Source of the DNA: Monocercomonoides exilis PA203
Lineage: Eukaryota; Protista; Preaxostyla
Direction: 5' to 3'
Length of the DNA stretch: 64,000 nucleotides
NCBI GenBank assembly: GCA_001643675.2
Contig: LSRY02000031.1
Coordinates: 558,001 to 622,000, forward strand
The stretch's first letter is position 1. The number at the start of each line of letters is the position of its first letter. Below, piece after piece: positions 26,101-56,953 of this stretch. Under the pieces are notes generated by a model, which was not told the origin of the DNA, searched no databases, and saw only the letters and a program-made list of their open reading frames with translations. A program made the translations under genes and the position numbers.

Positions 26101-27729
26101 ACAACAATCTGCAACTCCTCAAAAGGAGGAATGAGTGTGAGTGGAGGATATGTGATGATTGAGGCAGGTAACTTCAGCAACAACAGCCCTTCGATTGAGA
26201 ATTACCCATCTGTGCGAAGAAACATTATTTGCTCTGATTCTGCTTCGCTGACAATCTCCAGTTTGAAAGGTGGTGATGGAGTGAAAGACAATTCATCACT
26301 TTGGATTCTGAATGAAGGATGCACGCTTGATGGAATAGCAGGAGAAAGGTCATCTTCATTTTTCATTTCAGTGTTGGAGAGTGTTGAAGCAAAGGAAGTG
26401 GGAGAAGAAGTGGAGATTGTGTTCAAAGGGAAGCTTCTTCTCCCATGCGACTTGTCATTCATGGTTGTGAAGCAGATGGGAGAAGAAAAGCAGATTGAAA
26501 AATATGAGTTTGATGAAAGTGGATGTGTGTCAGAGACCGAAGTTGAAGGGAGACTGCCAAAAGAGATGATAACGGAAGCAGGAGAAGGGGTGGAAGTGAG
26601 TGTGTGCATTCTGTTTGGAGATGGAAATAATCCATCATCAACAAATTCATTCATTTTAAAGAATGCAAGCATAACTCTTCCAAAAGGCGATGAAATAATG
26701 TTTAAAAGTGAGAATAAAATTGAATGGAGTTTATTTGCCTTTATTGGATGTATTGTTATTGTAATAATTCTGTTATTTGTGATTGTTGTTGTTGTGCTCC
26801 TGAGAAAGAAATTGAAGGAATTGGAAAGGAATGTAGAAAAAGAGAGATTAGAAAATGAGCAGATAATGGGGAAGATTGAGAGGAGAAGAAGAGAAGGGAA
26901 TGGAGGGAGCTTTGAGATGAGTGAAATGCCATCCACATTACTGGAAGGGATGACAAGCCAAATTCCGCTTCTCATTGACAACGATGATCTTCCAGAGCCT
27001 CAGTCAATGAACAATGATGAAATACTGAATGAAAACGATCTTCCAGATTTGGAATCTTCATTGCCATTTTCTGAAGATTGTTCTATTTCCTTGGTATCTC
27101 AATCTCATTCACTCAATGTGATATCAGCGAAGAAGCCATTTCGAGAGAAGGAGAAAAAGAACATCAAAACATTACATTCAGTAATTCATTCGGTGCAAGG
27201 TAATTTCACACTGGGAACAAGAGCGATTGATGTTGTTGATGGGAAGGAAGTGGTTATGGAAGTGGCAGAGCTGTTTGAGCATTTGATTTCTGTTGGAGAT
27301 GAAAGGGTGGAAATGATGGGGAGGCAGTTGTGTCCATATACAATCTTTGTTGAAGAAGGGAACGAAAATGAAAAATACATATTGACTGAAGAATTGGAGG
27401 ATGAAAAGCAGAAGGAAGAAATGAAGCGATGGAAGGCTCCAGAAGAAGGAAATGAAGAAGATGGAATTGAAAAGGCAGTTGTTTTCGCACTTGGACTGAT
27501 TCTTCATGAAATGACAACAGGAGAGGTGCCTTTAAGCGAGTGCATTGCTGAAGAAGCGCTAGAGATGATGAAAGATGGGGTGCGACCGCTGACAGAAGGA
27601 ATCGAAGGAGAAGATCTGGTTGAGGTGATGGAGAAGATGTGGGCAGATGAGCCAAACGAAAGACCCACATTGGCAGAGATGAAAGAATTATTGAGAGAAT
27701 TGAAAGAAAACAATGAAGAGCAACAATGA
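20200..27729 (+). CDS. Giant type-I membrane protein: signal peptide, pectin-lyase-like right-handed beta-helix ectodomain (GG[A/G]x / FxxN repeats), TM helix, degenerate kinase-like tail
   Basis: The ORF 20365-27729 is 2454 aa. An upstream ATG at 20200 (MSGQLLLFICLHIAKA, signal-like) is probably joined by a short intron ending at ~20343. The TM segment is WSLFAFIGCIVIVIILLFVIVVVVLL. The tail RWKAPE..AVVFALGLILHEMTTGEVPL..MWADEPNERPT matches kinase subdomains VIII-XI only. Confidence 0.85.
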
Positions 27730-28471: not shown

Positions 28472-29440
28472 TAGGGTGAGTTATTTATCATATCCCCTTT
28501 TTTTTATCGGGACCTAAAATTTCTGGCTCTCCGGAGCACTTTTCGAAAAAAATAAATAATAGAAAATTATAAACACATTATTATAAGCTATTCCTGAAAA
28601 TCTTTTTTCATATTTTTATTTTAGTGAAAAGATCTGGTATTTTTTGTTTTATTTTTCAGATCAAAGACTTGCTCGTATTTTCACGAGCTTTTTGTTTTGA
28701 GATTTTTAAGTGTTATTCTTGTTATTAAACATAACTTCTTTACAATTTTGGTTATTTTTCATTGTTAAACACTTCGTTTTTTTATTTCTTTTTCCATTTC
28801 ACTAAATATCGACAAATAGAAGATTTTGAAGTGATATTTGAGTTGCTTTGTTTTTTAATGTTGAGAAATAGTTGAAAAAATGATTGAAATGATCATCACA
28901 AAGATTTTGAAATGAAAGAATGAAATTTGAAGCAAAAAACGCAAAAATACACAAAAACAAGATTTTTTGTAATAAAATCACGATCATAAAAAAGTTTAGA
29001 TTTTCTTCTTTTTGAACACCTTTATGTGTTAATAGTTTTTATATTAAAACTTGAAAAATAATGAAATATTTTGTTTTAATATATGAATTCTTTATTTTGT
29101 CGATATTTAGTGAAATGGAAAAAGAAATAAAAAAACGAAGTGTTTAACAATGAAAAATAACCAAAATTGTAAAGAAGTTATGTTTAATAACAAGAATAAC
29201 ACTTAAAAATCTCAAAACAAAAAGCTCGTGAAAATACGAGCAAGTCTTTGATCTGAAAAATAAAACAAAAAATACCAGATCTTTTCACTAAAATAAAAAT
29301 ATGAAAAAAGATTTTCAGGAATAGCTTATAATAATGTGTTTATAATTTTCTATTATTTATTTTTTTCGAAAAGTGCTCCGGAGAGCCAGAAATTTTAGGT
29401 CCCGATTAATTTTTTGGGTACCGATAAATTTCTGACCCTA
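28472..29440. mobile_element. Non-autonomous foldback element (hAT-like termini TAGGGT(G/C)AG) with 311-bp inverted arms
   Basis: Segment 28506-28816 is the reverse complement of 29096-29406. The ends are TAGGGTGAG and CTGACCCTA. The flanks TATTATGT / TATTATAT are a possible 8-bp TSD with 1 mismatch. There is no ORF. Confidence 0.8.
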
Positions 29441-40894: not shown

Positions 40895-41610
40895 TTATAT
40901 AAACACAGTTTCTTTCAAATTTGATTTTGTTCAAATAATGATAAAAATGTTATGGTTTCAGAATTGATTTTTTATTATTGACACAATCATAAACCTGATA
41001 AACCAGAATGAGCATTCAATTTTTTCGATTATACGGATATAACCTTGAATAATTTGGCTTCATTAAAATGAAACTGAAACAGAAAATGAAAAAAGAATAT
41101 GGGCAAAAATTTTTGCATTATGAAAAAACCTTCTATTTGTTCCATTCTTTTTCTTCAATCATTTCATTAAAAATCAATCGCAACGATGCAAAAAATTACT
41201 GAAAAATTCTCAAATTGAGAAAATAAATTACGAAAATATTGAATGGAACAAAATTCATAAATCAAAATATTTTTTTCCATATCTCTTTCCTTCATTAGCA
41301 GTGATGTATCACAAATAGACGGAAAAAAACTGTTTGTACTGTTGTTAATAATATCTTCCCGTTAAAAAATGATAGCATTAACATTTAAAGAAAGAAATTA
41401 ATAAATATTGAAATAATCAAATATTCATTTTTTTTCATTAACTTTTTTATTCTTTAATGTGTGAAGGAATTTTGTCGCAGTTATTTTATTTTCATATCAT
41501 CTCCTCAATCAACATTCAGTTTTTTCACAAAAATGTTATCTATTCGTGAATATAGTTATTCTTTTTAACATGAAAAAAAAATTATTTATATAAATTATTC
41601 TTTAGAAATT

Positions 41611-42508
41611 TTATAGTGTCAACTTTTTAATGGGACTTTTTCCTTAATTGGCACTTTTTATGTTTTTGCTTACAAAATGTCGAGAAACGAGAAGTTGTTT
41701 TCAGCATTTTACAAATCCTTTTTAACAGGTTTAATTCTATTTATTTACTGTTTTCATTTTTATTTTCGTTTTTTTACACATCGAGAAATTTCGTTTTTTT
41801 GCTAAATTTAATAGGACTTTTTCTAGCCAACCAGGCAACTCAAAAGAAATTGGGGACATGTTTTATATTGCATTTGCTTCGAACGATTAATCTTTAAAAC
41901 CTTTTTTTTCACAAACACCTTTTTCTTGATTTTTTCGCATTTCAAATTCTCATCAGCATAAAAAACATAAAACTGTTTATTTCTTTATTAATATAATGAA
42001 ATGAAAAAAATAAAAAAATGATATGAAAAACAAATACTTTGATAATGAAGTGTTGAAAAAATAAAACATTCTCATTTTCTATTTGTCTCAAACTGACAAA
42101 TGGCGCTTACTAAAAATGATCAATGATCAAACTTTTGTAACGAAGTTAAGTTAGAAACAAAAAGAAAATGAGAATGTTTTATTTTTTCAACACTTCATTA
42201 AACAAGAAAGTGGAGAATCAATTCCTTCTCTTATTTGAGAGACGCCACAATCTATGGGTCAGTCGCCCATTTGTGTGTTTTGGTGTATTGGATAAAAAAC
42301 CACTTTGCGCTTATAAACCCATAGGCGCAAAGAGAAGGAACTACAAAAAACACGAACAGTTTTGAAAACAAAACTTCAAAGGGTGGGAGTGAAAACGGTG
42401 GTGGGCAAAGAGAAGGAATTGATTCTCCACTTTCTTTTTTAATTAAAGTGCATAAGCACCTTAATTATCAAGAAAGTGTTTCATCAATTCCTTCTTTTAT
42501 TTGAGAGA
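41611..42508. repeat. Left inverted arm of the element
   Basis: It mirrors 46724-47621 with a constant coordinate sum of 89232 (no indels). Only one mismatch was noticed (42496/46736). Confidence 0.95.
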
Positions 42509-42513
42509 ATCAA

Positions 42514-45438
42514 TTAGTTGGATGATGAAGCCATCATTACTACCACAATGTGCGTCCTCTTTGCTTTGTTGCTCTCATCCTCCTTTTTTGCTTGTGATCT
42601 TGTTCGAATAATGAATCGCTCTTTAAGTGACTTCTGATTCTCCATCTCCTCATCAGGCTCATCCACTCGAGAGGGAAATTCAACAGTATCTCTAGCTTCT
42701 TCCTCACTCAAACATGGCTTCATCAGGCGCTTCTTGTCCCTCAGTACCATCCCAGATTCCATTGCTCGTATATCATTTTTGTTCCTCTGGTCTCTTTCTG
42801 GACTGGCGTACGCATTGCCACCATCTTCGGAACACAGCTTGGTTGCTAACTCTTCACTGGGAACGTTCATAGTTGAGGCAATCACTTTCCACAAGGTTGA
42901 AGCAAGATTGGCCTTCACATAATGCTTCACCAAAGTGTCTGTTCTAGGGGAAAGACGGGCAAACTTCGCAATCTGAGTTGGTGGAATTCCAGACATCGTT
43001 AGCGTTGAAAGTGTTGCATCCTTTGTTGAATAAGGAGTAAAATGGCTTTGAATTCCTGCTTCCTTTAACGTCTCCTTTGCTAATCGTCTGATGCCTTCCA
43101 CTGTTAGAGGCTGAAAAGTTTCGGTATTTAAAAACAATTTATTTCCATCTGGTCTTCTTCTTTGTATTTCTTCCCACAAAACCTGAATAGCCGAAACTGG
43201 GCAAATTGTCGGGTTTTCATTTAAAAAAGGAACGGCAATCTCTGTTCGATTGAGCGATGTTTTGAGCCTTGTGTCCAAGTTTATTCTTTCCTGCTCAAAT
43301 ATGGATCGTTCCATATCTACCCTTTCCAACTCTGTAAACCTGCACGCAGTGAATAACATGGTGAGCACAATGGCTTTCATTGTCAGATGTTTGAAACTCA
43401 AGCTTTGATTTTCTCCAAGATTAGAAAAGTATGTCAAAATGGTCTTCGGATTCCAGATCTCTTGAATCTTCTTATTTCTTGTCGTCTCCGTTCTTCTAAA
43501 CCCTCTAAACAATATTTTTATTATCGGAAAATCCCCTAAATTTGTGTTGTAAACCAAGCTTGTGAAAAATGAAACTGCTGAGCGGATGAGCTGCAAACAT
43601 GACAGCTTCATTCCATTGTCTCTAAGTGTAATAAATATGCTGGAACATCGAGCTGCCCACTCGTGAATATCCTCTGGAATTATGCCCATATCACTCTTTT
43701 CCCACTGTTCTCCAAAGTGTGCGAAGCCGAATAAATATCCATCCCACGTCGACTGAGCAATTCCCGATATGCACTCCTCTGCCAATGAAACTGGGAAAGA
43801 TCTTTCTTCCAAAGCCCTTCTCCACCAGCTCTCGCCTTTAACTCTTGTGGATTGATCAATATGACTCTTAACCGGCCTGGAGGAAGACATGCACCTGTGC
43901 TTGCCATTGATGGTCCCTTTCTCAGTACTGTTCTCAGACTCCTCCATTCGAATGTCCGATGAGGCGTCTTCTCCAATAGCACATCCCAGTTCTGCCCATT
44001 CCAGTTCGGCAAGAGTAATACTACTGGTACTCTCTCCTTCTGTGCCTTCCGAATCGTCATTGGTATCAGGGGAACTGGGGGGTGTGCCAGAACGCACTCT
44101 TTCTTCCATGGATATGCTAGACCGTCTTCTCCCAATGGGCTTCCTATTCCACGCCAACGCTCGACCTTGTGGTTGTGTTGAGCTGCAAAGGCGTCCATTG
44201 TTGGAGTAACTTATAGCACCACAAGAATCTGAGAGAGTTCTTCGTCTGTAATTCTGTAGCCTCCAACTCTTTCCAGGCGGGACAAAGCATCGGCTCTTGT
44301 GTTTTGTTATCCGGGGAGATGAACTGCTTTCAGGACTATTTTCAATTTCTCCTTCAATGTCCATATCCTTTTGAGTGTTTGACGGAGATTCCTTCCTGCA
44401 TTCCATCTGTTCACGTTGAAAACAACTGTTGAATTGTCTGACCGAAGTTGTATCTGTGATATCCGACTTTCTGATAGGATTGGGGCAAAGTGAGTTAATG
44501 CAAGTTCCACTGCTTTTAATTCTCTGTAGTTGGATGATTGGTTTTTCACAGAGAATGGAAAACGACTGTGACAATCTAGTGACATTCTGTTTATTCTGAG
44601 GGCTGCTCCCCAGGAGCGTTCTGATGCATCTGTGGTTAGAACTGCTTCTGGAATAAACACTGGATTTAGTCTGCGTCTGGTATTCTTCCTCAATGTCCAT
44701 CTCCATCTTCTTATCTGCTGGAGGATTGAAGCATTCAGCCTCATCATTCCATCCCATCCGTTTGTTAAAACTCCTTTCTGCAACAATTTGAAGATTGATT
44801 GGAGGTGCAAAAATGCGTCTGGCAGAACGAAGCGTGTAGAACTGAGCTTTCCCACGAATGATGCTAAGTCCTTCTCTCTGACAGTCTTGGCTCTTATGCA
44901 CCTTCTCTCCCACTTGTGACACAGCTCTCGCACTGCCTTTCTTCTTTCCTCCGTTAGACACACATCGAAGCTGGTTGTATTCAATTCGAATCCCAGGAAA
45001 CTGAACTGCGAACTCGGTATGAGGTTGCACTTCTTCGTGTTTATCTGCAGACCAAGACTTTCCAAAAATACGATTATCTCCTGTATTATGTTCTTCAAGA
45101 TTTGCTGATCTTGATGCAGAAAAAGAAGGTCGTCCAAATAGGCAATGACTCTGACATCCCATCTTCTTCTTATCTCCGCTGTCACCTTCCTCATTATATG
45201 TGTGAACAGGCGCGGTGCATCTACAAAGCCGAAAGGCATTCCTTTGAAGGAGTAGTCTTTTCCCATGAATCTGAAAGCAAGATTGGGAATTAGTTCTCTT
45301 GAAACTGGAATTAAATAATAAGCTTGTTCCAAGTCTAGGGATACTGCGTAATCCTTCCGTCTTATCAGCCGTTCCACTGTTTTCTCTCCGTCGCACTTGA
45401 AATGTGTTCTTTTCACCACTGCATTCAGTTTCCGACAA
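42514..45438 (-). CDS. Tyrosine recombinase ORF of the DIRS-like element (YR domain in the C-terminal ~400 aa; N-terminal part overlaps pol)
   Basis: Contains a SAM-like ISGIAQSTWDGY segment, then IRSAVSFF, IWNPKTIL, LTMKAIVLTMLFTACRFTEL (catalytic R), RLKT (K), ICPVSAI, FTPYSTKDA and LVKHY (catalytic Y). The true start is unknown. Confidence 0.85.
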   Translation of the reverse strand: MSETECSGEKNTFQVRRRENSGTADKTEGLRSIPRLGTSLLFNSSFKRTNSQSCFQIHGKRLLLQRNAFRLCRCTAPVHTYNEEGDSGDKKKMGCQSHCLFGRPSFSASRSANLEEHNTGDNRIFGKSWSADKHEEVQPHTEFAVQFPGIRIEYNQLRCVSNGGKKKGSARAVSQVGEKVHKSQDCQREGLSIIRGKAQFYTLRSARRIFAPPINLQIVAERSFNKRMGWNDEAECFNPPADKKMEMDIEEEYQTQTKSSVYSRSSSNHRCIRTLLGSSPQNKQNVTRLSQSFSILCEKPIIQLQRIKSSGTCINSLCPNPIRKSDITDTTSVRQFNSCFQREQMECRKESPSNTQKDMDIEGEIENSPESSSSPRITKHKSRCFVPPGKSWRLQNYRRRTLSDSCGAISYSNNGRLCSSTQPQGRALAWNRKPIGRRRSSISMEERVRSGTPPSSPDTNDDSEGTEGESTSSITLAELEWAELGCAIGEDASSDIRMEESENSTEKGTINGKHRCMSSSRPVKSHIDQSTRVKGESWWRRALEERSFPVSLAEECISGIAQSTWDGYLFGFAHFGEQWEKSDMGIIPEDIHEWAARCSSIFITLRDNGMKLSCLQLIRSAVSFFTSLVYNTNLGDFPIIKILFRGFRRTETTRNKKIQEIWNPKTILTYFSNLGENQSLSFKHLTMKAIVLTMLFTACRFTELERVDMERSIFEQERINLDTRLKTSLNRTEIAVPFLNENPTICPVSAIQVLWEEIQRRRPDGNKLFLNTETFQPLTVEGIRRLAKETLKEAGIQSHFTPYSTKDATLSTLTMSGIPPTQIAKFARLSPRTDTLVKHYVKANLASTLWKVIASTMNVPSEELATKLCSEDGGNAYASPERDQRNKNDIRAMESGMVLRDKKRLMKPCLSEEEARDTVEFPSRVDEPDEEMENQKSLKERFIIRTRSQAKKEDESNKAKRTHIVVVMMASSSN

Positions 45439-45809
45439 TCGAGAATTTGTCTCCAGCTGCCTGACTTCTTTTGAATGAGAAATACATTGTTTCTGTGTTT
45501 GACCTCTCTCTGCTCCATTGGGATTACAACTCCTGTTCGTATTTGTTCTTCTAATATTTTCTTGAACTCCTTGATCTTTTGTTGGTTGAGAAGCAACGCT
45601 CCGTCTCTAAATTGAGTTTTGCTGAGAGCTTTTCGGGCTTGCTTGCTCTTCCACATGGCCTGTACTCCTCTGCTTATCAATTTCTCTCCTCCGATTCGCT
45701 TCCATGCCGAGATAATCAATGCTGTTCTTCCTCCTATCTGCCTCCTCTGCTCTGTCTCCTTGTGAACTGGACCCAAAATTGTTGACGCCCCCTTGGTCTC
45801 CTGCTCCAA
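43680..45809 (-). pseudogene. DIRS pol: reverse transcriptase - RNase H - N6-adenine methyltransferase-like domain, interrupted by two in-frame TAA (44307-44309, 44211-44213)
   Basis: RT motifs are WRQILDCRKLN, SLDLEQAY, GMPFG and AYLDDLLF. RNase H motifs are LTTDAS, SSNYREL, RSDNST and HLPG*QNTRADALSR. MT-like motifs are MDAFAAQHN, DGLAYPW, LAHPPVPLI and LPNWNGQNW. Confidence 0.85.
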
Positions 45810-46684
45810 CCGCTCTGGCTCCTCCTTCTTCCGAATTGCTGTCTTCTTGCGAGCGCTGAGGACCGGGGGGACCTCCGAAAAAACCGCGGGTTTGAACGAG
45901 GAAGGGGATAACTTAATCTTGTTCGAAGTGTATCTGGTTATTCTCTTGCAGTAGTCTGAACTCGTGTTAGAGGAAATGTTGGTCTTCGGAAACCTCCTTC
46001 AAACTTAGCTTCTTGTCTTGCTTCTCTGAGAATCAGTTCCTGTCTCTCTATGAGGATTCCCGTTGAATCGTCTGCACTCATTAATGTGGCAGCCCTGAAA
46101 CCAAACCTGCATTGAATTCGAACCGTTCGTGCCTCTTGAAGCGCCTTGGTAATCAAAATCAAGATGTCAGCCAGTCTTTGTTTTGCACCTTCCTTTGAAG
46201 TCGGTATCTCGGCTAAGCCTATGAGCGCAGCTTTAATTGCCTGGAAAAGATAAATCTCCATCTTGTAACCCGCCTGATCTAACGCATCGTTAATCCAGTT
46301 CTTTGTTCTCTTGGAAGCGGGTGGTTCTTGAGATAACAATGGGCTAAAATCCTGTGTTGAATACTCCTCAACAACATCTTGGACGGATATAGTGGAAAGC
46401 TTTAGATCATAAATTGAAAAATTTGGCGCCTTTCCAAAAATGTCCTCAAACTCCTGACAAATACGTTGAGACATCTCTATGTCATCTTCGTTTTCCTTTC
46501 TGGCATCCGAATGGGTCACCTCCTGTGTCAAACTTTCCGATGACGAAGGTGAAAAAATTGACGCGGAAGATAAGATGTCCTGTTGAGAAAAGGTCCCTGG
46601 TTGGCTTTGCGCCCCACTGTTCTGCATTGCAGCCTCAGCCGACGGCGTAAGTCCAACAATCGGAGAGAATTGTGAAAAAGACAT
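45734..46684 (-). CDS. Gag-like ORF1 of the DIRS-like element, with one in-frame TAA at 45938-45940
   Basis: A 248-aa ORF begins at the first ATG inside the arm. The same frame continues past the TAA with an Arg-rich tail (PRFFRRSPR..FGRRRSQSGWSRRPRGR..RGGR*), as is typical of DIRS gag ends. Confidence 0.65.
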
Positions 46685-46723
46685 TATTGATCAAATGTGG
46701 CGACTGACCCATTGATTGCGGCG

Positions 46724-47621
46724 TCTCTCAAATAATAGAAGGAATTGATGAAACACTTTCTTGATAATTAAGGTGCTTATGCACTTTAATTAAAAAAGAA
46801 AGTGGAGAATCAATTCCTTCTCTTTGCCCACCACCGTTTTCACTCCCACCCTTTGAAGTTTTGTTTTCAAAACTGTTCGTGTTTTTTGTAGTTCCTTCTC
46901 TTTGCGCCTATGGGTTTATAAGCGCAAAGTGGTTTTTTATCCAATACACCAAAACACACAAATGGGCGACTGACCCATAGATTGTGGCGTCTCTCAAATA
47001 AGAGAAGGAATTGATTCTCCACTTTCTTGTTTAATGAAGTGTTGAAAAAATAAAACATTCTCATTTTCTTTTTGTTTCTAACTTAACTTCGTTACAAAAG
47101 TTTGATCATTGATCATTTTTAGTAAGCGCCATTTGTCAGTTTGAGACAAATAGAAAATGAGAATGTTTTATTTTTTCAACACTTCATTATCAAAGTATTT
47201 GTTTTTCATATCATTTTTTTATTTTTTTCATTTCATTATATTAATAAAGAAATAAACAGTTTTATGTTTTTTATGCTGATGAGAATTTGAAATGCGAAAA
47301 AATCAAGAAAAAGGTGTTTGTGAAAAAAAAGGTTTTAAAGATTAATCGTTCGAAGCAAATGCAATATAAAACATGTCCCCAATTTCTTTTGAGTTGCCTG
47401 GTTGGCTAGAAAAAGTCCTATTAAATTTAGCAAAAAAACGAAATTTCTCGATGTGTAAAAAAACGAAAATAAAAATGAAAACAGTAAATAAATAGAATTA
47501 AACCTGTTAAAAAGGATTTGTAAAATGCTGAAAACAACTTCTCGTTTCTCGACATTTTGTAAGCAAAAACATAAAAAGTGCCAATTAAGGAAAAAGTCCC
47601 ATTAAAAAGTTGACACTATAA
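46724..47621. repeat. Right inverted arm of the element
   Basis: It mirrors 41611-42508. The ORF track shows an identical 65-aa ORF on opposite strands in the two arms. Confidence 0.95.
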
Positions 47622-49183: not shown

Positions 49184-52100
49184 TCATTCCATCCGACTGA
49201 AGCTCCCATCTGTGTCTTCGCTGTCTGCCTCTTCACATCTCGATCCATCTCCAATGTCCAACGCGTCTGATGCCGTCACAAACATCGACCCCATCGGTAT
49301 CTTCATGAACAGCTCCCGCTTCACATCCCCCAATGTCACCCGCTCATCCCACCCCTGCACCACACACTTCTCCTCCAACTCCCGAAGACTGCTCCCTCCC
49401 ATCTTCTCCACCTTCGGCCGCTCCCCATTCACTATCTTCTGCCCTGCCACCACTCCCTCATACTCCCCAAACGGGATCTCCAGCGTCACACACTCCCACA
49501 CCATCATCCCAATCGAAAACACAACAGACTCCTTCCTCGCCCCCATCTTCTTGTTCATCTGCAGCTCTGGAGCCTTCCACCTCAGGCACTCTTTTTTGAA
49601 GGCATCCTCATCCTCTTCAAATGCTGATGAAGGAAGGGAGTCATCATCATCATCATCACCATTATCACTGGTAGATGTCACAACTGTTGATGATGAGATG
49701 GAGGATGAATCTGAATCATCATCTGACAATAAGTCAGAGTGCATCACAATACAAATCACCATGTGTTCTGAGAACAACACAACGTGAGGACTCAGATTAT
49801 TCAATGATTGAAGAGGGTTTTCCATCTCGTCAAACGAGTGGAGTGCCCCATTCGCCACCCAGAACAACACCTGTGCTGCCGTTTGTTCTCTTTCTTTCAA
49901 CGAGCCAATTGCCATCTCCTTCTTCGCATTCCTTCCATGCAACAGCATGAACAGCGAATCCCTCAAATCCACAATCAGCTTCTCATGAGGCGATGAACAG
50001 TCCATTGCATCCACCAAGTTTGACATGGATGAGGTGGTTGGACACAAATCCTCCCCTCTAACAAATGTGGAGTCTGAATCAGTTGTTGAAGTGGATGAAA
50101 TGGATGAAATGGAAGGGGATGGTGATCTCTTTCGAATATCTTCTTCTTCAACCTTCTCCAGCATCCATTCTGGAATCTTGTCTGAATCTCTTCCAAGAAT
50201 GTATTCTGTTGAGCCACTCTCAGAAAGAAGATGTTCCGATGACTCTGAGTGTCCCAAGCTTTTTTCATAAACTCTCTTCTTTATCCTCTCTTCATTCTTC
50301 TTCTCTGCCTCTCTTTCAGCTCTTCTCCACTGCTCCTCAGGTGACATCTCCATCGTCACCATTTCAAACGCCTTCGGATCCTTCTTCACTGTGTCTTCCA
50401 CAATTATCTCCAACTCTTCTGTTCTTCTCTTTTGCTTCCTCCATCGAATAATGAATATTATCGACACAATTAGAATGATTAGAAGAACAAATGCCATGAT
50501 AATAACAATCAACAACAAATACGATTTCCCTTCTTTTCCTCCTTCAACAAGTTTTCCTTCTCCATTTGTTTTTGATTCGCTCTTGTTCTTCAGGATGAAA
50601 GAATCAGTTGATGATGGATTATTTCCATCACCAAACAGAATGCACACACTCACCTCCACCCCTACTCCTGCATCCGTTATCGTCTCTTTTGGCAGTCTCC
50701 CTTCAACTTCTGTCTCTGACACACATCCACTTTCACCAAACTCATGCTGCTCAATCTGCTTTTCTTCTCCCATTTGCTTCACAACCATGAATGACAAGTC
50801 GCATGGAAGCAGCTCCTTCCCTTTGAACACAATCTCCTCTTCTTCTCCCACTCCCTTTGCTTCAATACCCTCCAACGCTGGAATGAAGAATGGAGACACC
50901 CTCTCAGATACAATCCCTTCTAAATTGCATCCTCCATTCAGAATCCAAAGTGATGTATTTGGTAAAACTCCATCTCCTCCTTTCAAGCTCGAAATGGTCA
51001 GTGAGGCAGAATTTGAGCAAATGATATTTCTTCTCAATGATGGGTAATTCTCAATCGAAGGATTGTTGCTCTCAAATCTTCCATCTTTGATAATTATTGT
51101 GCCTCCACTCGCACTCATCCCTCCCTTTGATGAGTTGCAAATCGTGGTGTCTCTCACAACTGCTTCACTCTTCGACAAGTCAACAACTGACCCATTCCAT
51201 TTGCACACTTCCTCAGAAATCTCATTCCCTTCTGTTCCTGTTTCCAGATTCCCCTCAAACACACACGATTCCATCAATATCTCCTGTGTTGATGTGATTG
51301 ACACTTGGCTCCCCTTTGGTGACTCTGATGTGCACTCATGAAAAGAGCAGTTGCACATCTCAAATCCACTCATCGGCTGACTTGAGCAAACAATGCTTGA
51401 TCCAGAAGTTGATCGGCTGATGTTTGTGAATGAAGACAACACCAATGACAAAACGAGTGATGAGTGGCTGTTTTCAAGTGAGATCAGACTCCTTTTTTCC
51501 AAATCAATGCTTGTGGCTGTAAACCTCGAAATGCTCACTTTCTCACTTTTCCCACATTCAATCAACGAACTTTTGCACTGAACACCATCTATTCCTACAT
51601 CCTCAAATGTTGCCCTTTCTGAATGCAATATCATGAATACAGTCTTTGAGAATTTCAAGTGGCCAACAATGCACTTTTCTGCCTCAAACAACCCTTCTTC
51701 AACAACAATCAGAGAAAAGTCAAAAATGGTCTGTGTATTTTCTGTTGTTCTGCTCTCTGATAAGAATGAAACAGATTCCAGAATGAGAGATCCATTCAGC
51801 TGGTGCATCAAGCACGAGCAGACAACATTCCCTATTCCACCAAAAACAAATGACACCTTCTCAAATCGAACAGATTCCGAGGTTCTCACAGTTCCCTCAT
51901 TCCCAAGCTCAATCTCTCTCACTTTTATCTCCCCATTCCTGCTCGCCTCCATCGACTTGATCGTCACCTTCTCAGCTGAGCACGAACCAGTCAATTCTGT
52001 TTCATTCCAAACAAACAGTTGCGAATAATCCGATGGGATGATGTGGCTCACCCCAACATTCAGCGATGAACATGTGCTCTTCATCTCCCCACACTGCTTG

Positions 52101-55100
52101 CTGTTGCTGCTGTTCTCCACAATCAATGACACAAATATGAATTCGCTCCTGAACACAAACACCCTCCTCAGCAGATCCTCTTCATCCCCATAATTGTCTG
52201 CTGTGCACCCCCATATCGCCAGATCCCTCACAAACGGCTCCCAAAAATTTATCAGGAATTGTGATTCACTTATCTGCGAGTCAAGGTCTGTGCACTTCAC
52301 AAACACATCTCTCCCCTTCGATGCAACATTCCTTCGGAATGTGATGTTCGACAGCACAAATGGCAATGCCTTCTGTGAGACACTCTGTGATTTCAAAAAC
52401 AGTCCTCCGCCTCTCCCAATGTTCGAGCAGAAACACTCTGTCACATTCGTATGATTCATCTCCAATCTCCCCCTCTCATTGAGAAGGAAAAGCACTCCTC
52501 CTCCTTCATGAGAACTTGTCGATCCACAATTGTCAATCGTTGAATTCTCTATTTTCAATCTCACTTCATTTGTAATATCACAACAAAGCAATGAAGGGTT
52601 GTTTGACGCACTGTGCTTCACATTCACAAATGTGCATTGCTCAAATGGAATATTCCAAATTTCTTCTGCATTATCATTCTCCCTTCCAGGAATAACATTT
52701 TCACTCATCGCAATTGCACTTTTCCCGCTCAATGAAATATCCGAAAATGTCACGTTGTTCATTGTTGTCACACAATCAGCTGATATGCTCATTATCTCAT
52801 GCATCGTTGAGAATCCAGCTATTTCTGTCTTTTCAATAGAAACAATTCCTTTCGAAGCACTGATCAGAACAAATGACACCTCACTTTCAGCATTGCCAAT
52901 TGTGCGAATCGAACAGCTGACAACACTCGTTTTGATTGCTTCTGATCCTGCTTGGATAAGGATGCTTTCTCCGTTGTCAAAGGAACTTGGAATCAGAATC
53001 CCCAATTCACTGAACTGAACAACCCCTTTGCATTCAACAACAGCATCCCCATTTCCTTCAAAAGCTTGAACAAATTGGATTTTGTCTGATTTGCCATTTG
53101 TTCCTTCCATTTTCATCCCATTCATCCCAATCACACCTCTAACATCACAAACCCCATGAATCATCATCGTCTCAACTGTTGAACTGCCGATCCGATTCAT
53201 CCCATAATCAACAGATTGGCACGGAAGATTTGGAAAGCCACACACAACAACATTGTTTCCTTCCTCTGCAATATACACACTCGTTCCAACAGATTTCCAG
53301 AAAAAGATCAGTGGGATTGCACATTCCTTGTTTTCTCCATCATATCCCATCAGAGAGTCCTCTGTCAGCATCTCCAATCTGTCATTCACAAATGGAAGTG
53401 TTTCGTTCTTGATGCTCTTGCCAAGCGATGGAGATGAAATGAACAGATCCTTCCCATATTTCGCATTGTTTGGTTTATCAGATGAAAAAACTTGTGAGGA
53501 TATCACAAACCCTGCCTCTTCCTCGTTTATTATCTTCAACATTATTCCTCCTCCATATCCAACACTTCCCTCTTCATATGGTGCTGTGCAACAATAAAAC
53601 GAACACATATTAATCAACAGATTCGTTTTCGAAGATGCCTCACAAAAGAGTGCACCTCCTCCAATCTCAGTTCCCTCCTCTCCGGTAATAGCACACCCTT
53701 CAAATGTGCAGTCATCTATTTCAACTTTGAAATCTCTTCCATCAATATTATCATCATCCTCATTGTTCACAATGCTGATGCATCCTCCACTTCCCTTCGA
53801 ACCAGTGATCGATGAAAATGTGCATCCTGACATCTCTTCAATAATCCCCTTGTGGCACTCAACAACACTCCCATCACCAAATGTGATTTCGGAAAAATCA
53901 CTATGAGTCATGTTCATCGAAGGCACACTTTCAGCATTCCCCTCAACAACAAATATCGATGAATCTCCAATTTTCATATTCTCTGATCCGAACTCACTCA
54001 CATCCACAGCCCCTCCAACAGCCTTCACAAACGCTGTCGAAATAGGCTCAGTGCCTCCTTCCATCCCGCATTTGCTCAGTGTGAGCTTCCCTGAATGACA
54101 CTCAAACACACTTTCATGAAACATCAGCGATTTCTTCAATGAAAACACAATGCCAGTCACACACACAGAAACTGTGTTTTTTATCAATCCACTTTGAGCT
54201 CCCTCTTTCTGATCACAAACATCACACTTCATCTCATCCTCTTTGGATGCAACGCTCCATTCATGTGAAACCAACCCCAATTCCTCCCCAAAGACAAATG
54301 GCTCAAGAAGAGCAACATCCTTTTTCTTCCCTTCAAAATGGAGCGACACTGCCTTCGAAATGGATGAACACGGAAACTCTTCAAATCCACACTTCGAGAA
54401 ATCATGGCTCAATGATCCTCCCCCAACAAACGCTGGTGCTGAAAAGTTGTTCCACAAATAGACACACAGTGGAATTGGGAACGATTCATCCCCATTTTCA
54501 TATCCCTGCATCTTGCTCTTCGTTTCCAATGAAGCTGTCAATGAAGTGATCTTCCCACTTGTTGCAGTTGATTCCAGATCGATCGAATCAACAAAAATAT
54601 CGCTCCCCAATTTTGCTCGATTTCCTTCAAATCCTGATGAAATCAGAAAGTCTGTATTTGTATCTTTCACTTTCAGCCCAATCCCTCCTCCTCTCCCTTG
54701 TGTGGCTGAGGCATAACAGTTCTTCACAATGCCTCCTTTCACATTCAATGAACTCCCACTTCCCACTTCAACCATCATTCCCCCTCCAAACTCACAGTCT
54801 TCATTCCCACAACCATCAACAGTGCATCCATCAAGAGTTATCGAATATGACCCTTCACTAGCACTTATCAGAGATGATCCTGCTGTTGTTCTCACAATGT
54901 TGCTGAACACACATTTATCCAGAGACAATGTCACAGATGATTCTTGAGAAAGTGATATCACACTCGTGGTGCTGAATGTTTGTTCCCATCTCACATCTTG
55001 CATCTTCAACTCTCCCCCCTCCAGTTTCACAAGTGAGTTCTGAATGCTCCTTTCCTCTGAATGAGCTGAATCCATCGAAATGTTCATTCGCTTCACATCC

Positions 55101-56953
55101 ATCAACCCATTTCCCTCAACCTCAAACAGTCTGCATTGCCTGTTGTTTTCAAACGATGTATTGTGAACAACTGACAGATCATTCACAGCCAATTCCCCTG
55201 TTCCAACACAAAACAGACTCAATCCATTTCCCTCAAATTTCGTTTCAATGGATGAGCCAGATGAAGAAGCTCCATTCACAAAGATTGTTTTCTCTCCAAT
55301 GTCAACTCCCTTTCCTTCCACAATTGTTCCACTCAACACCTTGATTTCCTCCACAAACCCCACAATCATTTGAGACAGGCAATGACTGACTGTCGAGCAT
55401 GCACAACTTTCATTCAACCCGCAACTGAATGTGTCTTTTGAATTTGTCTGATTCTCCCTCGAAGCAACAAATCTGCTTCTTCCTCCTTCATTTGGAAGCC
55501 ATTCGCTTTTATCCCCATCTGCATAATATCTTACCCCTTCTGTTCTTGTCGAATAACAGAAAGCAACTTGGGGGTCTGTGCTATTGTCCTCAAAATTAAT
55601 GTCATTTCCATATGAAGCAGTGTTACTGTGGAAAAAACAAAACCACAAAAGATTTCCATTAAAACCATTTGTCATTACACTTAATGCACCTCCCCGAAAA
55701 TCTGAATGGCATCCTTGAAATAAACAGTTGTGTGCAACAACTTTATCAACCGTATGCCAATGAATAAATCCTCCACCATCTGAATGTTTGAACTTGTTTG
55801 CACTGCAATTTTGAAACAAACAATTTAATACACAATCTTTTGTTTTGTTTGTTTTTGAACTCCAAATACCCAGTCCTCCAGCGTCATTTCCTGACCATCC
55901 ATCTTTGAACAAGCAATCATCAATATATAATTGAATTGTTATTGTGGAAATTTCAACACCAGCCCCTCCACAATCACTTGAAGAGACACAATAACACTCA
56001 GCAAATGTGGAATGTTTCACTGTGCATTCTGCAATACTCTCTGCAAATATCCCCCCTCCTCTGGTTGATGTCGCATTGCATTTCACAAATGAAGAATTCT
56101 CCACTGTCAGCGTTGCACTCGAATTATCATGCACATAAAGTGCTCCACCGCATGCAGCAGAGCATTCAATCCATTCAGCATTCTTGTATGTCTGTGTTTG
56201 AGTTGTTGACTGTCTGTCTGTATTTCTCACTTTCCGATCCATTCTTTCATTCTGAATAAATGTGCAATTGTTGCAGGTGAATGAACCAGATCCTTCTGTT
56301 CCACTCACAATTCCTCTCTCAAGCACATTCATCGATCGTTTAACATCACAATCCTCCATTTTGCTCATCTTCATCATCCTCTCTTTTCCAGTTTGTACTG
56401 TCTCTATTTCACAATATTTCTTTGAGATATTCGCAAATTTGCAGTTTTGGATTCCTTCAAAACTTCCTGAACCGTCTCTCAGAAAACTTCCTCCACTCCC
56501 ACAAAACACAGCATCCTCAAACTCACTGTTTCTCACAAACAACGAAGACAAGTCACCCCCTTCCATCTTCACCACACTCCCCATCATCCCACATTTCTGA
56601 CCATTCCCAACACCCAAAGTCGTGTTTATCAGACAGCATGCCCCTCCATTCCTCACATAATACCCATTCCACTCATCGTTTCTCACAAACACACTCCCCT
56701 CAACCTGCAGCAATGATCCTGCTTTTATTTCAATCATCACACAATCTTCTGGCTTTTCAAGCAACATCCCCTTCATTTCGACTGATGAGTTATACATTTC
56801 GCAGAACATTTGAACAACGCTTCCCTTCCCCAAAATACCACTCTTCTCCATTCCACGAACATGGAAATGATCATGTTCATTTCTCAATCTATCATTTCTT
56901 TCTTTGCCACAAATGGCTGACAACAAACACACAAGTATAATGAAGGGAATCAT
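49184..56953 (-). CDS. Giant type-I membrane protein (2589 aa): signal peptide, beta-helix ectodomain, TM, degenerate kinase-like tail; paralog of 20200-27729
   Basis: The signal peptide is MIPFIILVCLLSAICG, and the ectodomain has GGA/GGG+FxxN repeats. The TM is YLLLIVIIMAFVLLIILIVSIIFII followed by RWRK. The tail is LRWKAPEL..SVVFSIGMMVWECVTLEIPF..GERP. Confidence 0.9.
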   Translation of the reverse strand: MIPFIILVCLLSAICGKERNDRLRNEHDHFHVRGMEKSGILGKGSVVQMFCEMYNSSVEMKGMLLEKPEDCVMIEIKAGSLLQVEGSVFVRNDEWNGYYVRNGGACCLINTTLGVGNGQKCGMMGSVVKMEGGDLSSLFVRNSEFEDAVFCGSGGSFLRDGSGSFEGIQNCKFANISKKYCEIETVQTGKERMMKMSKMEDCDVKRSMNVLERGIVSGTEGSGSFTCNNCTFIQNERMDRKVRNTDRQSTTQTQTYKNAEWIECSAACGGALYVHDNSSATLTVENSSFVKCNATSTRGGGIFAESIAECTVKHSTFAECYCVSSSDCGGAGVEISTITIQLYIDDCLFKDGWSGNDAGGLGIWSSKTNKTKDCVLNCLFQNCSANKFKHSDGGGFIHWHTVDKVVAHNCLFQGCHSDFRGGALSVMTNGFNGNLLWFCFFHSNTASYGNDINFEDNSTDPQVAFCYSTRTEGVRYYADGDKSEWLPNEGGRSRFVASRENQTNSKDTFSCGLNESCACSTVSHCLSQMIVGFVEEIKVLSGTIVEGKGVDIGEKTIFVNGASSSGSSIETKFEGNGLSLFCVGTGELAVNDLSVVHNTSFENNRQCRLFEVEGNGLMDVKRMNISMDSAHSEERSIQNSLVKLEGGELKMQDVRWEQTFSTTSVISLSQESSVTLSLDKCVFSNIVRTTAGSSLISASEGSYSITLDGCTVDGCGNEDCEFGGGMMVEVGSGSSLNVKGGIVKNCYASATQGRGGGIGLKVKDTNTDFLISSGFEGNRAKLGSDIFVDSIDLESTATSGKITSLTASLETKSKMQGYENGDESFPIPLCVYLWNNFSAPAFVGGGSLSHDFSKCGFEEFPCSSISKAVSLHFEGKKKDVALLEPFVFGEELGLVSHEWSVASKEDEMKCDVCDQKEGAQSGLIKNTVSVCVTGIVFSLKKSLMFHESVFECHSGKLTLSKCGMEGGTEPISTAFVKAVGGAVDVSEFGSENMKIGDSSIFVVEGNAESVPSMNMTHSDFSEITFGDGSVVECHKGIIEEMSGCTFSSITGSKGSGGCISIVNNEDDDNIDGRDFKVEIDDCTFEGCAITGEEGTEIGGGALFCEASSKTNLLINMCSFYCCTAPYEEGSVGYGGGIMLKIINEEEAGFVISSQVFSSDKPNNAKYGKDLFISSPSLGKSIKNETLPFVNDRLEMLTEDSLMGYDGENKECAIPLIFFWKSVGTSVYIAEEGNNVVVCGFPNLPCQSVDYGMNRIGSSTVETMMIHGVCDVRGVIGMNGMKMEGTNGKSDKIQFVQAFEGNGDAVVECKGVVQFSELGILIPSSFDNGESILIQAGSEAIKTSVVSCSIRTIGNAESEVSFVLISASKGIVSIEKTEIAGFSTMHEIMSISADCVTTMNNVTFSDISLSGKSAIAMSENVIPGRENDNAEEIWNIPFEQCTFVNVKHSASNNPSLLCCDITNEVRLKIENSTIDNCGSTSSHEGGGVLFLLNERGRLEMNHTNVTECFCSNIGRGGGLFLKSQSVSQKALPFVLSNITFRRNVASKGRDVFVKCTDLDSQISESQFLINFWEPFVRDLAIWGCTADNYGDEEDLLRRVFVFRSEFIFVSLIVENSSNSKQCGEMKSTCSSLNVGVSHIIPSDYSQLFVWNETELTGSCSAEKVTIKSMEASRNGEIKVREIELGNEGTVRTSESVRFEKVSFVFGGIGNVVCSCLMHQLNGSLILESVSFLSESRTTENTQTIFDFSLIVVEEGLFEAEKCIVGHLKFSKTVFMILHSERATFEDVGIDGVQCKSSLIECGKSEKVSISRFTATSIDLEKRSLISLENSHSSLVLSLVLSSFTNISRSTSGSSIVCSSQPMSGFEMCNCSFHECTSESPKGSQVSITSTQEILMESCVFEGNLETGTEGNEISEEVCKWNGSVVDLSKSEAVVRDTTICNSSKGGMSASGGTIIIKDGRFESNNPSIENYPSLRRNIICSNSASLTISSLKGGDGVLPNTSLWILNGGCNLEGIVSERVSPFFIPALEGIEAKGVGEEEEIVFKGKELLPCDLSFMVVKQMGEEKQIEQHEFGESGCVSETEVEGRLPKETITDAGVGVEVSVCILFGDGNNPSSTDSFILKNKSESKTNGEGKLVEGGKEGKSYLLLIVIIMAFVLLIILIVSIIFIIRWRKQKRRTEELEIIVEDTVKKDPKAFEMVTMEMSPEEQWRRAEREAEKKNEERIKKRVYEKSLGHSESSEHLLSESGSTEYILGRDSDKIPEWMLEKVEEEDIRKRSPSPSISSISSTSTTDSDSTFVRGEDLCPTTSSMSNLVDAMDCSSPHEKLIVDLRDSLFMLLHGRNAKKEMAIGSLKEREQTAAQVLFWVANGALHSFDEMENPLQSLNNLSPHVVLFSEHMVICIVMHSDLLSDDDSDSSSISSSTVVTSTSDNGDDDDDDSLPSSAFEEDEDAFKKECLRWKAPELQMNKKMGARKESVVFSIGMMVWECVTLEIPFGEYEGVVAGQKIVNGERPKVEKMGGSSLRELEEKCVVQGWDERVTLGDVKRELFMKIPMGSMFVTASDALDIGDGSRCEEADSEDTDGSFSRME

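Follow-up and report, generated by a model that had tools for sequence, protein, structure and literature searches.

In the window analysed here, a 64,000-nt stretch of Monocercomonoides exilis DNA, a DIRS-like retroelement lies between two long mirrored arms, which raises the question whether the locus represents a new hybrid mobile element or a single rearrangement. The sequence is taken from the Nanopore assembly of M. exilis, produced with Canu, Nanopolish and Pilon. A nematode origin, as base composition might suggest, was rejected on a 100% protein match to MONOS_11312. In this assembly the arms (41611-42508 and 46724-47621) are 898 nt each, 100% complementary and separated by a 4215-nt spacer, which bears out the near-perfect 898-bp arms of the preliminary description. 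The sequence outside the arms is unique, as also claimed: the left flank (41285-41610) has no second match in the genome, the left and right flanks differ, and the locus lies mid-contig. An Rfam search of the 64-kb window gave 0 matches. Judged from its comparison with other copies, the locus is a one-off rearrangement in which a DIRS element is nested in a foldback transposon, and not a new hybrid mobile element, Table 1.

Table 1. Features of the locus, with position in the window, strand and the observation on which each assignment is based.
Feature	Position	Strand	Basis
Left TA flank of the foldback transposon	41614..41615		Putative 2-bp target duplication; TA at both tips and in most free copies
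Left foldback arm, 479 nt	41616..42094	+	More than 40 genomic matches; 179 termini; conserved motifs
Foldback-centre loop, asymmetric, 54 nt	42095..42148	+	Hairpin folding; inverted in the right-hand copy
Right foldback arm, first 51 nt, with TT (42198-42199) at the DIRS join	42149..42199	+	3' junction alignment of 17 DIRS copies
DIRS 3' ITR (right ITR in element orientation)	42200..42267	-	84% complementary partner; tip common to 17 copies
DIRS internal complementary region (ICR)	42408..42508	-	Complements of the 3' tip and the 5' tip, joined
Predicted tyrosine recombinase (YR) ORF, 974 aa	42514..45438	-	PF00589
Predicted RT/RNase H ORF, 500 aa	44307..45809	-	PF00078
Putative gag-like ORF1, 248 aa	45938..46684	-	Role from position only
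DIRS 5' ITR with 29-nt left extension	46699..46791	-	5' end common to 19 of 20 other copies
Templated inverted insertion, locus-specific, 397 nt	46792..47188		Exact reverse complement of 42044-42440
Remainder of the right foldback arm, 428 nt	47189..47616	-	Mirror of 41616-42043
Right TA flank of the foldback transposon	47617..47618		Sequence at the right tip

The core (42198/42200-46791, ~4.59 kb) is, by its predicted genes and its termini, a canonical DIRS1-type retrotransposon. On the minus strand, the RT ORF matches PF00078 at 1.3e-29, with a weak match to PF17919 besides, and the YR ORF matches PF00589 at 5e-8 (33.4 bits, curated cut-off 27.1 bits; domain at residues 684-826). The first ~377 codons of the YR ORF overlap the RT ORF in another frame. 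The gag-like ORF1 has no Pfam match, and an exact-protein look-up found nothing on record for it. The residues encoded by 43381-44400, between RNase H and YR, gave no match to a methyltransferase-like domain at E = 10 when searched with Pfam rather than with a dedicated profile. No DDE ORF is found among the ORFs of the element, in agreement with the preliminary description.

The ITR pair (42191-42267 and 46699-46775) is 77 nt long and 84% complementary. In the ICR, 42408-42446 is complementary to the 3' tip and is joined to 42439-42508, which is complementary to the 5' tip; the canonical 5' end, finishing in GCACTTTAATT, is at 46791. The natural pairing between the ICR side and the 5' terminus recurs in 14 other DIRS copies, where it extends over 66-104 nt at 83-99%. 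In the window copy it stops where the perfect arms reach their inner end (42508/46724).

Elsewhere in the genome there are at least 20 full-length copies of the DIRS family, all with canonical asymmetric ITR/ICR ends and without arms. The 5' end of 19 of 20 other copies stops at the equivalent of 46790-46792, followed by unrelated flank, and the remaining copy is 5'-truncated at the equivalent of 46775. Aligned at their 3' junctions, 17 copies share the tip but have different flanks, each with TT just before AAAAAAG. Aligning both flanks of 15 copies, as had been proposed, revealed no duplication, just the shared TT at each junction; for two further copies, a genome-wide search with the 5' flank found no mirrored copy across the element. 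Arms at family-level identity are absent from the other ~27 full or partial copies listed. The window copy is 90-94% identical to 16 sisters, among which the median pairwise identity is 93.2%, and by this measure it is old.

The genome comparison identifies the outer 430 nt of each arm as part of a ~1.01-kb TA-flanked foldback transposon. Its termini have 179 tip matches genome-wide (0 in the control). For the arm, more than 40 matches of 80-92% identity were obtained across the genome, most of them arranged in inverted pairs with ~162 bp between the partners; the nearest relative of the window arm is 92% identical to it. The family comprises ~90 dispersed copies with no ORF; it has the terminal inverted repeats and the many dispersed copies by which a TIR DNA transposon is recognised. 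Twelve complete copies are 1006-1016 bp long, except for one extended copy (1523 bp), and the identity between their arms is 94.2-99.6%, never 100%. One family member (L015) is a 1522-bp palindrome, 98.4% self-complementary, whose arms have taken in the loop and ~200 nt of new sequence. This is an inward arm extension of the same kind as that at the window locus.

The 16-nt subterminal direct repeats noticed at 41627 and 41808 are present, and 10 of 11 family copies retain them at arm positions 15 and 195; they look like transposase binding sites. The tips are indeed flanked by TA, but their position had been set 2 nt off, the true TA being at 41614-41615 and 47617-47618. The family tip reads TA followed by GGGTCAAC, and the window copy TA followed by GTGTCAAC, so that the "TAGTG" tip described earlier results from one G>T change and a chance TA in the flank. 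Most free copies likewise have TA next to both tips and no duplication longer than this, and a Merlin-type target duplication of 8-9 bp was not found around the foldback copies. The proposal that the outer arm halves would rejoin directly as a palindrome does not hold, since the free copies keep a 160-nt hairpin centre between the arms (equivalent to 42041-42200; folding energy -46.9 kcal/mol, z = -13.9).

One 2.4-kb family member (L083) contains an ORF of 359 aa for a predicted IS1595/Merlin-type transposase (PF12762, 3.6e-20). The ORF sits in a separately dispersed 1.4-kb Merlin/IS1595-type unit, and none of the three close copies that were compared has foldback arms around it. As this unit occurs elsewhere without the arms, L083 is another nested insertion, and its transposase was rejected as the autonomous partner of the foldback. 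A non-exhaustive search found no DDE transposase between matching foldback tips. Foldback arms around no more than their hairpin centre occur as free copies; arms enclosing a DDE transposase of their own did not turn up in this search.

These comparisons bear directly on the two readings offered earlier. The first was a YR retroelement travelling inside DDE-mobilised ends. Separate genome-wide searches with the arm, the ITR, the core and the junction find the composite once in 82 Mb and at no other locus with different flanks, whereas its full-length sisters are canonical and armless. Such copies, which the preliminary description itself held would mark the locus as a one-off, are therefore what the genome contains, and the claim of a new hybrid-transposon class is not supported. 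The second reading was a DIRS-like element targeting the centre of a foldback. Its anatomy is confirmed but the targeting is not, as 17 other DIRS copies lie in unrelated DNA and one in a foldback relative.

It is the symmetry of the arms that has to be explained beyond the nesting. A simple nested insertion would resume at 47189, which fits the geometry of the free copies (1006-1016 bp). The DIRS 5' end is separated from this point by the 397-nt inverted insertion, which is composed of 241 nt of the DIRS 3' region (46792-47032), a 51-nt piece of arm (47033-47083), the loop in inverted form (47084-47137) and a second 51-nt piece of arm (47138-47188). Its loop matches in inverted orientation at 54/54 positions and in direct orientation at 16/54. 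The insertion is absent from every other DIRS copy compared and from the free foldback copies. It abuts a pre-existing inverted homology on either side, one of 70 nt between the ICR and the 5' tip and one of 428 nt in the foldback arm. Each arm thus contains about 240 nt from the DIRS 3' end, which was duplicated as an inverted copy along with the foldback centre. Both had been overlooked inside the arms in the earlier reading.

We consider it probable that the nested insertion is old and that the arms were made alike recently, at the DNA level, by hairpin-primed templated repair or by gene conversion. First, a palindromic non-autonomous TIR transposon of ~1.01 kb, with 479-nt arms and a 54-nt loop, inserted at TA. 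Second, a canonical DIRS of ~4.59 kb integrated at TT, 51 nt into the right arm and without duplication, as its sisters do. In a third, much later step, the stretch linking the DIRS 5' end to the rest of the right arm would have been rebuilt on the template of the mirror-image left side. Once a break had been resected, the DIRS 5' terminus would pair with its own ICR over 70 nt to form a hairpin with a large loop; synthesis from the 3' end would then copy the DIRS 3' region, the foldback centre and the left arm, and the new strand would re-anneal to the existing right arm over 428 nt of homology. This would leave the 397-nt templated inverted insertion and arms that are alike at all 898 nt, and continuing arm-to-arm gene conversion would hold them identical. 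Comparison with other copies shows the first two steps, while the third is one that we infer.

The DIRS copy (90-94% to its sisters) and the arm (92% to its nearest relative) are diverged, yet the two arms show 0/898 differences, which is why the mirroring should be recent and at the DNA level. Several points count against this scheme. Identity over the whole 428-nt outer arm demands synthesis through the entire arm, or else strand segregation or mismatch repair favouring the new strand. In addition, the duplication around a DIRS copy in a foldback relative (L061) is direct and not inverted, and the proposed mechanism does not yield it. No simple nested allele (with 46791 joined to 47189) and no foldback-only allele was seen; the left flank being unique, no paralogous foldback-empty site exists in the genome.

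The same relative speaks for a duplication made at DIRS integration. In this alternative a cruciform-prone palindrome would be cut symmetrically on its two strands, which would place the centre on both sides, and the arms would be homogenised later. The DIRS copy in L061 sits 250-260 nt inside one arm of this foldback relative (75-79% identical), and the palindrome centre is present on both sides of it as a direct duplication of 559 bp (552/559 identical, loop 56/56 direct), with the same junction sequence at both ends. The hairpin-primed scheme leaves this duplication without explanation. By a post hoc estimate, two of ~27 DIRS copies in a repeat family covering ~0.1-0.3% of the genome is above chance. 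However, the loop in the window has the inverted orientation instead, and the duplication also takes in 241 nt of DIRS sequence, so that a second, conversion-type event is needed anyway. The 15 copies compared on both flanks and the two searched on one show no duplication either. We regard a duplication at integration as unlikely.

A comparably small chance is given to the locus having preserved, as a fossil, an ICR-guided fold-back of DIRS replication that overran the circular junction. If true, pairing of the DIRS ICR with the terminus would be a recurrent palindrome seed here, and some symmetric products could be moved by a DNA transposase.

Mirroring during DIRS replication, with the product then mobilised, appears very improbable. 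In this scenario, minus-strand cDNA made from a read-through transcript would fold on the ICR, as it normally does to restore the ends, and extend past the circular junction through transduced foldback sequence, and the symmetric molecule, cut at the foldback tips, would be inserted at TA by the DDE transposase of the foldback, yielding a true hybrid passenger. It would account for the inner arm boundary at the ICR/5'-tip pairing and for both ends being intact transposon tips with TA, and run-off extension would give exactly equal arms with 100% identity. The ICR is essential, and DIRS-1 cDNA is single-stranded and mostly linear (PMC7192593). However, there is no source copy (nearest DIRS copy 92-94%, nearest arm 92%, no second composite) and no transposase with these tips was found in our search; two rare steps are required, as well as a transcript reaching beyond the foldback tip.

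That the symmetry is an artefact of Canu, Nanopolish or Pilon, the true locus being a simple nested insertion, is equally remote: ten Pilon rounds were applied to repeat-rich sequence (PMC8767320), the exact identity over 898 nt is unusual next to the 94-99.6% of free copies, and the public reads, from the assembly's own sample, are unitigs of ~100-280 nt of which none spans an arm or the structure, but an insertion of 397 nt is beyond what polishing can create, the free copies came out of the same pipeline with differences between their arms, the flank too would have been mirrored by a fold-back chimeric read at this mid-contig locus with its differing unique flanks, an 87-nt contig matches 47605-47691 exactly (17 nt of it on the arm side), and with a read N50 of 8.9 kb at ~150x coverage (PMC8767320) many reads should span 6 kb.

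The locus can be compared with three known systems. The foldback resembles the TA-flanked foldback or long-TIR MITEs of the Tc1/mariner type in being nearly all two long inverted arms, with TA on both sides, conserved subterminal direct repeats and no ORF, and differs from them in its tip, GGGTCAAC instead of CAGTG. Tc6/Tc7-like elements offer a comparison.

The core agrees with DIRS1-like elements (PMC3266345) in having RT/RNase H and a tyrosine recombinase on one strand with a long ORF overlap, imperfect ITRs (here 77 nt, 84%), a pair of ICRs, side by side close to the 3' end, that complement the two tips and overlap at their junction, a left extension pairing with the ICR only, and integration at a short shared sequence (here TT) with no target duplication. 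It differs in that, past the 5' terminus of the window copy, 241 nt of its 3' end are repeated in inverted orientation, and in its host, an oxymonad (Metamonada). According to the survey of DIRS1 (Piednoel et al. 2011, PMC3266345), presence in Metamonada or excavates is uncertain. The genome paper of M. exilis left these repeats unclassified, and no searchable paper mentions both DIRS and Monocercomonoides. A well-preserved DIRS1-type family with intact ITR/ICR architecture is here documented in an oxymonad.

In yeast, foldback inversions that are primed by a hairpin and resolved through homology are an established process (PMC7467729; PMC11724301). There, as proposed here, foldback inversions and templated inverted insertions start at a short, pre-existing inverted homology able to form a hairpin once the DNA is resected and are resolved via a second homology. 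If such TE-seeded fold-back is common in the repeat-rich M. exilis genome, it would help to explain its many inverted gene duplications. The window locus differs from yeast in that the hairpin stem would come from a retrotransposon replication signal (ICR/5' tip) and the return path from the second arm of the host palindromic transposon; with this stem and this arm the event would stay local (397 nt) and both unique flanks would be kept. It would then offer a base-resolved case in which a retrotransposon pairing signal and a host palindrome jointly template a local inverted duplication.

The composite locus is a nested insertion, a DIRS copy inside a foldback transposon, combined with a local templated inverted duplication. 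The preliminary description was right about the long symmetric arms, which are 100% complementary and 4215 nt apart, and about the lack of a DDE ORF in the element. The core has three ORFs on the minus strand. Two of them, the RT ORF and the recombinase-bearing ORF, lie in different frames and overlap; DIRS1-like elements are known to have long ORF overlaps. Whole-genome searches (82,301,135 bases in the 101 contigs of the M. exilis Nanopore assembly) found the composite once and divide each arm into three parts, see the table.

Features of the composite locus and of the rest of the window, in window coordinates.
Feature	Position	Size	Description
Left / right arm	41611-42508 / 46724-47621	898 nt	
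Arm, outer part		430 nt	>40 genomic matches, 80-92% identity, nearly all as inverted pairs ~162 bp apart
Arm, middle part	42041-42200	160 nt	falls between the inverted outer-arm pairs; hairpin with 52-nt stems and 54-nt loop, -46.9 kcal/mol, z = -13.9
Arm, inner part	42198-42508	~310 nt	at least 17 sites, 87-96% identity, without outer parts, always adjoining core position 1
Canonical DIRS	42198/42200-46791		
Internal complementary region (ICR)	42408-42508		
Gag-like ORF	core, minus strand	248 aa	
RT/RNase H ORF	core, minus strand		PF00078, 1.3e-29
Recombinase-bearing ORF	core, minus strand	974 aa	tyrosine recombinase domain PF00589, 5e-8
RT/recombinase ORF overlap	44307-45438	1.1 kb	
Intervening insert	46792-47188	397 nt	exact reverse complement of 42044-42440
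Insert, part 1		241 nt	DIRS 3' end
Insert, part 2		51 nt	foldback arm
Insert, part 3			loop, inverted: 54/54 inverted vs 16/54 direct
Insert, part 4		51 nt	further foldback arm
Remaining right foldback arm	47189-47616	428 nt	
Further small foldback	28503-28826 / 29086-29409	324-nt arms	98% complementary, 259 nt apart
Inverted duplication	20905-26663 / 50586-56335	~5.7 kb	arms 85-91% alike, ~24 kb apart

The outer 590 nt of the arm is thus part of a free-standing palindromic transposon of ~1.01 kb. Its tip pattern occurs 179 times in the genome and the control 0 times, with most occurrences paired ~1010 bp apart. Twelve complete copies have an arm-to-arm identity of 94.2-99.6%, and their tips read GGGTCAAC...GTTGACCC with TA on either side; no duplication longer than TA surrounds any of the 12. 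The 16-nt subterminal direct repeats reported earlier are real, and 10 of 11 family copies keep them at the same arm positions. The proposed TA-flanked tip holds in that TA flanks the foldback tips, but its placement was off by 2 nt. Since the window copy reads GTGTCAAC while the family tips read TA followed by GGGTCAAC, the Tc1-like "TAGTG" is a copy-specific substitution plus a chance flanking TA.

Eleven of these 12 copies measure 1006-1016 bp. The remaining one, L015 (G000:C32:1012906-1014427), is extended to 1523 bp and has grown into a 1522-bp palindrome, 98.4% self-complementary, whose arms include the normally asymmetric loop and ~200 nt of new, unrelated sequence. Inward extension of this kind is also seen at the composite locus.

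A check for a DDE transposase between the outer arms found none with the foldback tips. The 2.4-kb foldback member L083 (G000:C14:463500-466430) contains an IS1595/Merlin-type ORF (1188-2267, minus strand, 359 aa, PF12762 at 3.6e-20), rejected as the foldback transposase since it lies in a 1.4-kb Merlin/IS1595-type transposon that is nested within the foldback arm and dispersed independently without foldback arms (at least 8 copies with 95-100% protein identity, >100 related matches genome-wide). This abundance agrees with the Merlin elements previously reported from M. exilis (PMC8101967).

The 4215-nt core is matched by at least 20 full-length copies at 85-92% identity. They have one 3' tip in common, where the flanks end in TT, followed by AAAAAAGAAAGTG. 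Of 20 copies, 19 have a 5' end that corresponds to window 46790-46792 (...GCACTTTAATT), followed by unrelated DNA, and one is cut short at the position that matches 46775. The family element is ~4.59 kb long and asymmetric, with 77-nt inverted terminal repeats that are 84% alike and a 29-nt left extension at the 5' end. The ICR consists of the complements of the 3' tip and the 5' tip, directly joined in that order, and a further 14 copies show its pairing with the 5' terminus, over 66-104 nt at 83-99%. Neither a target duplication beyond the common TT nor flank repeats were seen in the 15 copies compared on both flanks. No other element-centred palindrome was found within the family, and no methyltransferase-like domain was detectable in the window copy.

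Some DIRS loci have peculiarities of their own. Two copies on different contigs, L043 (C38) and L047 (C52), have identical flanks and 99.9% identity; they may reflect either segmental duplication in the recent past or a duplicate left uncollapsed in the assembly. Two inverted copies ~32 kb apart (G000:C80:1302164-1306366 and 1338086-1342303), with a common internal deletion and similar outer flanks, suggest a large inverted segmental duplication including the element. In the most diverged copy, L081 (G000:C1:65318-66618), the 5' end is followed, at ~position 490-501, by 13 nt resembling the 3' tip, which may be a circle-junction remnant. L082 (G000:C44:532300-537100) is an inverted repeat whose arms (99.75%) measure at least 1985 bp, are separated by a ~813-bp spacer and each contain a 250-bp DIRS 5' fragment; they may extend past the stretch covered.

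At the composite locus, the junction between DIRS and the foldback is a TT that lies 51 nt inside the right foldback arm. A simple nested insertion would run from 46791 directly into 47189-47616, but the 397-nt insert intervenes. On either side of it is an inverted homology that predates the event and is now 100% alike: the ICR/5'-tip pairing (70 nt) and the foldback arm (428 nt).

Over its 3' 1.75 kb, the window DIRS shows 90-94% identity to 16 sisters (median pairwise identity of the sisters 93.2%). It has no close relative, and the foldback arm reaches only 92% identity with its nearest relative, so both insertions look old. In contrast, there is no difference between the arms at any of the 898 positions, so the mirroring is recent, or maintained by arm-to-arm conversion. 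It probably arose on DNA in place, not in the original retrotransposition. We infer a five-step hairpin-primed repair. After a break at, or close to, the point where the DIRS 5' end meets the right arm, resection would expose the DIRS 5' terminus, which would pair with the ICR into a hairpin with a 4.2-kb loop. The 3' end would then extend outward, first through the 3' region of DIRS, next through the centre of the foldback and finally through the left arm, and the new strand would re-anneal to the old right arm.

A minority reading is that DIRS integration cuts palindromic targets at symmetric sites. It is kept alive by L061 (G000:C32:220300-226300), where a deletion derivative of DIRS sits in a relative of the window's foldback (75-79% identity). 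This DIRS lacks the ICR and has a 1.1-kb internal deletion; each of its ends is of the 3'-tip type, and the junction sequence is the same at both. A direct duplicate of the palindrome centre lies on either side (627-1185 and 4348-4906; 559 bp, 552/559 identical), with a loop that matches at 56/56 positions in direct orientation. Such a direct duplication cannot result from hairpin-primed copying that uses the element's own flank. The earlier idea that DIRS aims at the foldback centre is right about the anatomy, as the copy is nested in the foldback, in its right arm. Targeting of the centre is not supported: 17 other copies sit in unrelated DNA.

We disfavour an assembly artefact for the composite structure, known here from the assembly sequence, because the locus is mid-contig, its left and right unique flanks are unlike each other, a 397-nt insertion cannot be created by polishing, and arm differences survived in free foldback copies that went through the same pipeline. 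No sequenced piece spanning an arm was found in the public runs retrieved, all of them short unitigs from the assembly's own sample. The assembly was made with Canu 1.8 (read N50 8.9 kb) and polished with Nanopolish and ten Pilon rounds; 35% of it is unclassified repeats, and DIRS is nowhere mentioned (PMC8767320). The hybrid element of the preliminary description, a tyrosine-recombinase retroelement within DDE-mobilised ends, is rejected, as the composite is single and DIRS (at least 20 canonical full-length copies) and foldback are each free-standing elsewhere.

Elsewhere in the window, the product of the ORF at 3505-5625 matches Monocercomonoides MONOS_11312 at 100% identity, which makes the host an oxymonad protist and not an animal. 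The ~5.7-kb inverted duplication, which explains the mirrored GC skew, extends over two very long ORFs without introns, of 2454 and 2589 aa. A C-terminal kinase-like domain was found in 49184-56953, the ORF of the two that was scanned. The DIRS composite lies off-centre within the spacer of this duplication.

The DIRS and the foldback are new members of known element kinds; no paper in the literature searched contains both DIRS and Monocercomonoides. In yeast, hairpin-primed foldback inversions are documented that start at a pre-existing inverted homology and are resolved at a second homology (PMC7467729; PMC11724301). The architecture of the M. exilis DIRS is the DIRS1-like architecture of Piednoel et al. 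(PMC3266345).
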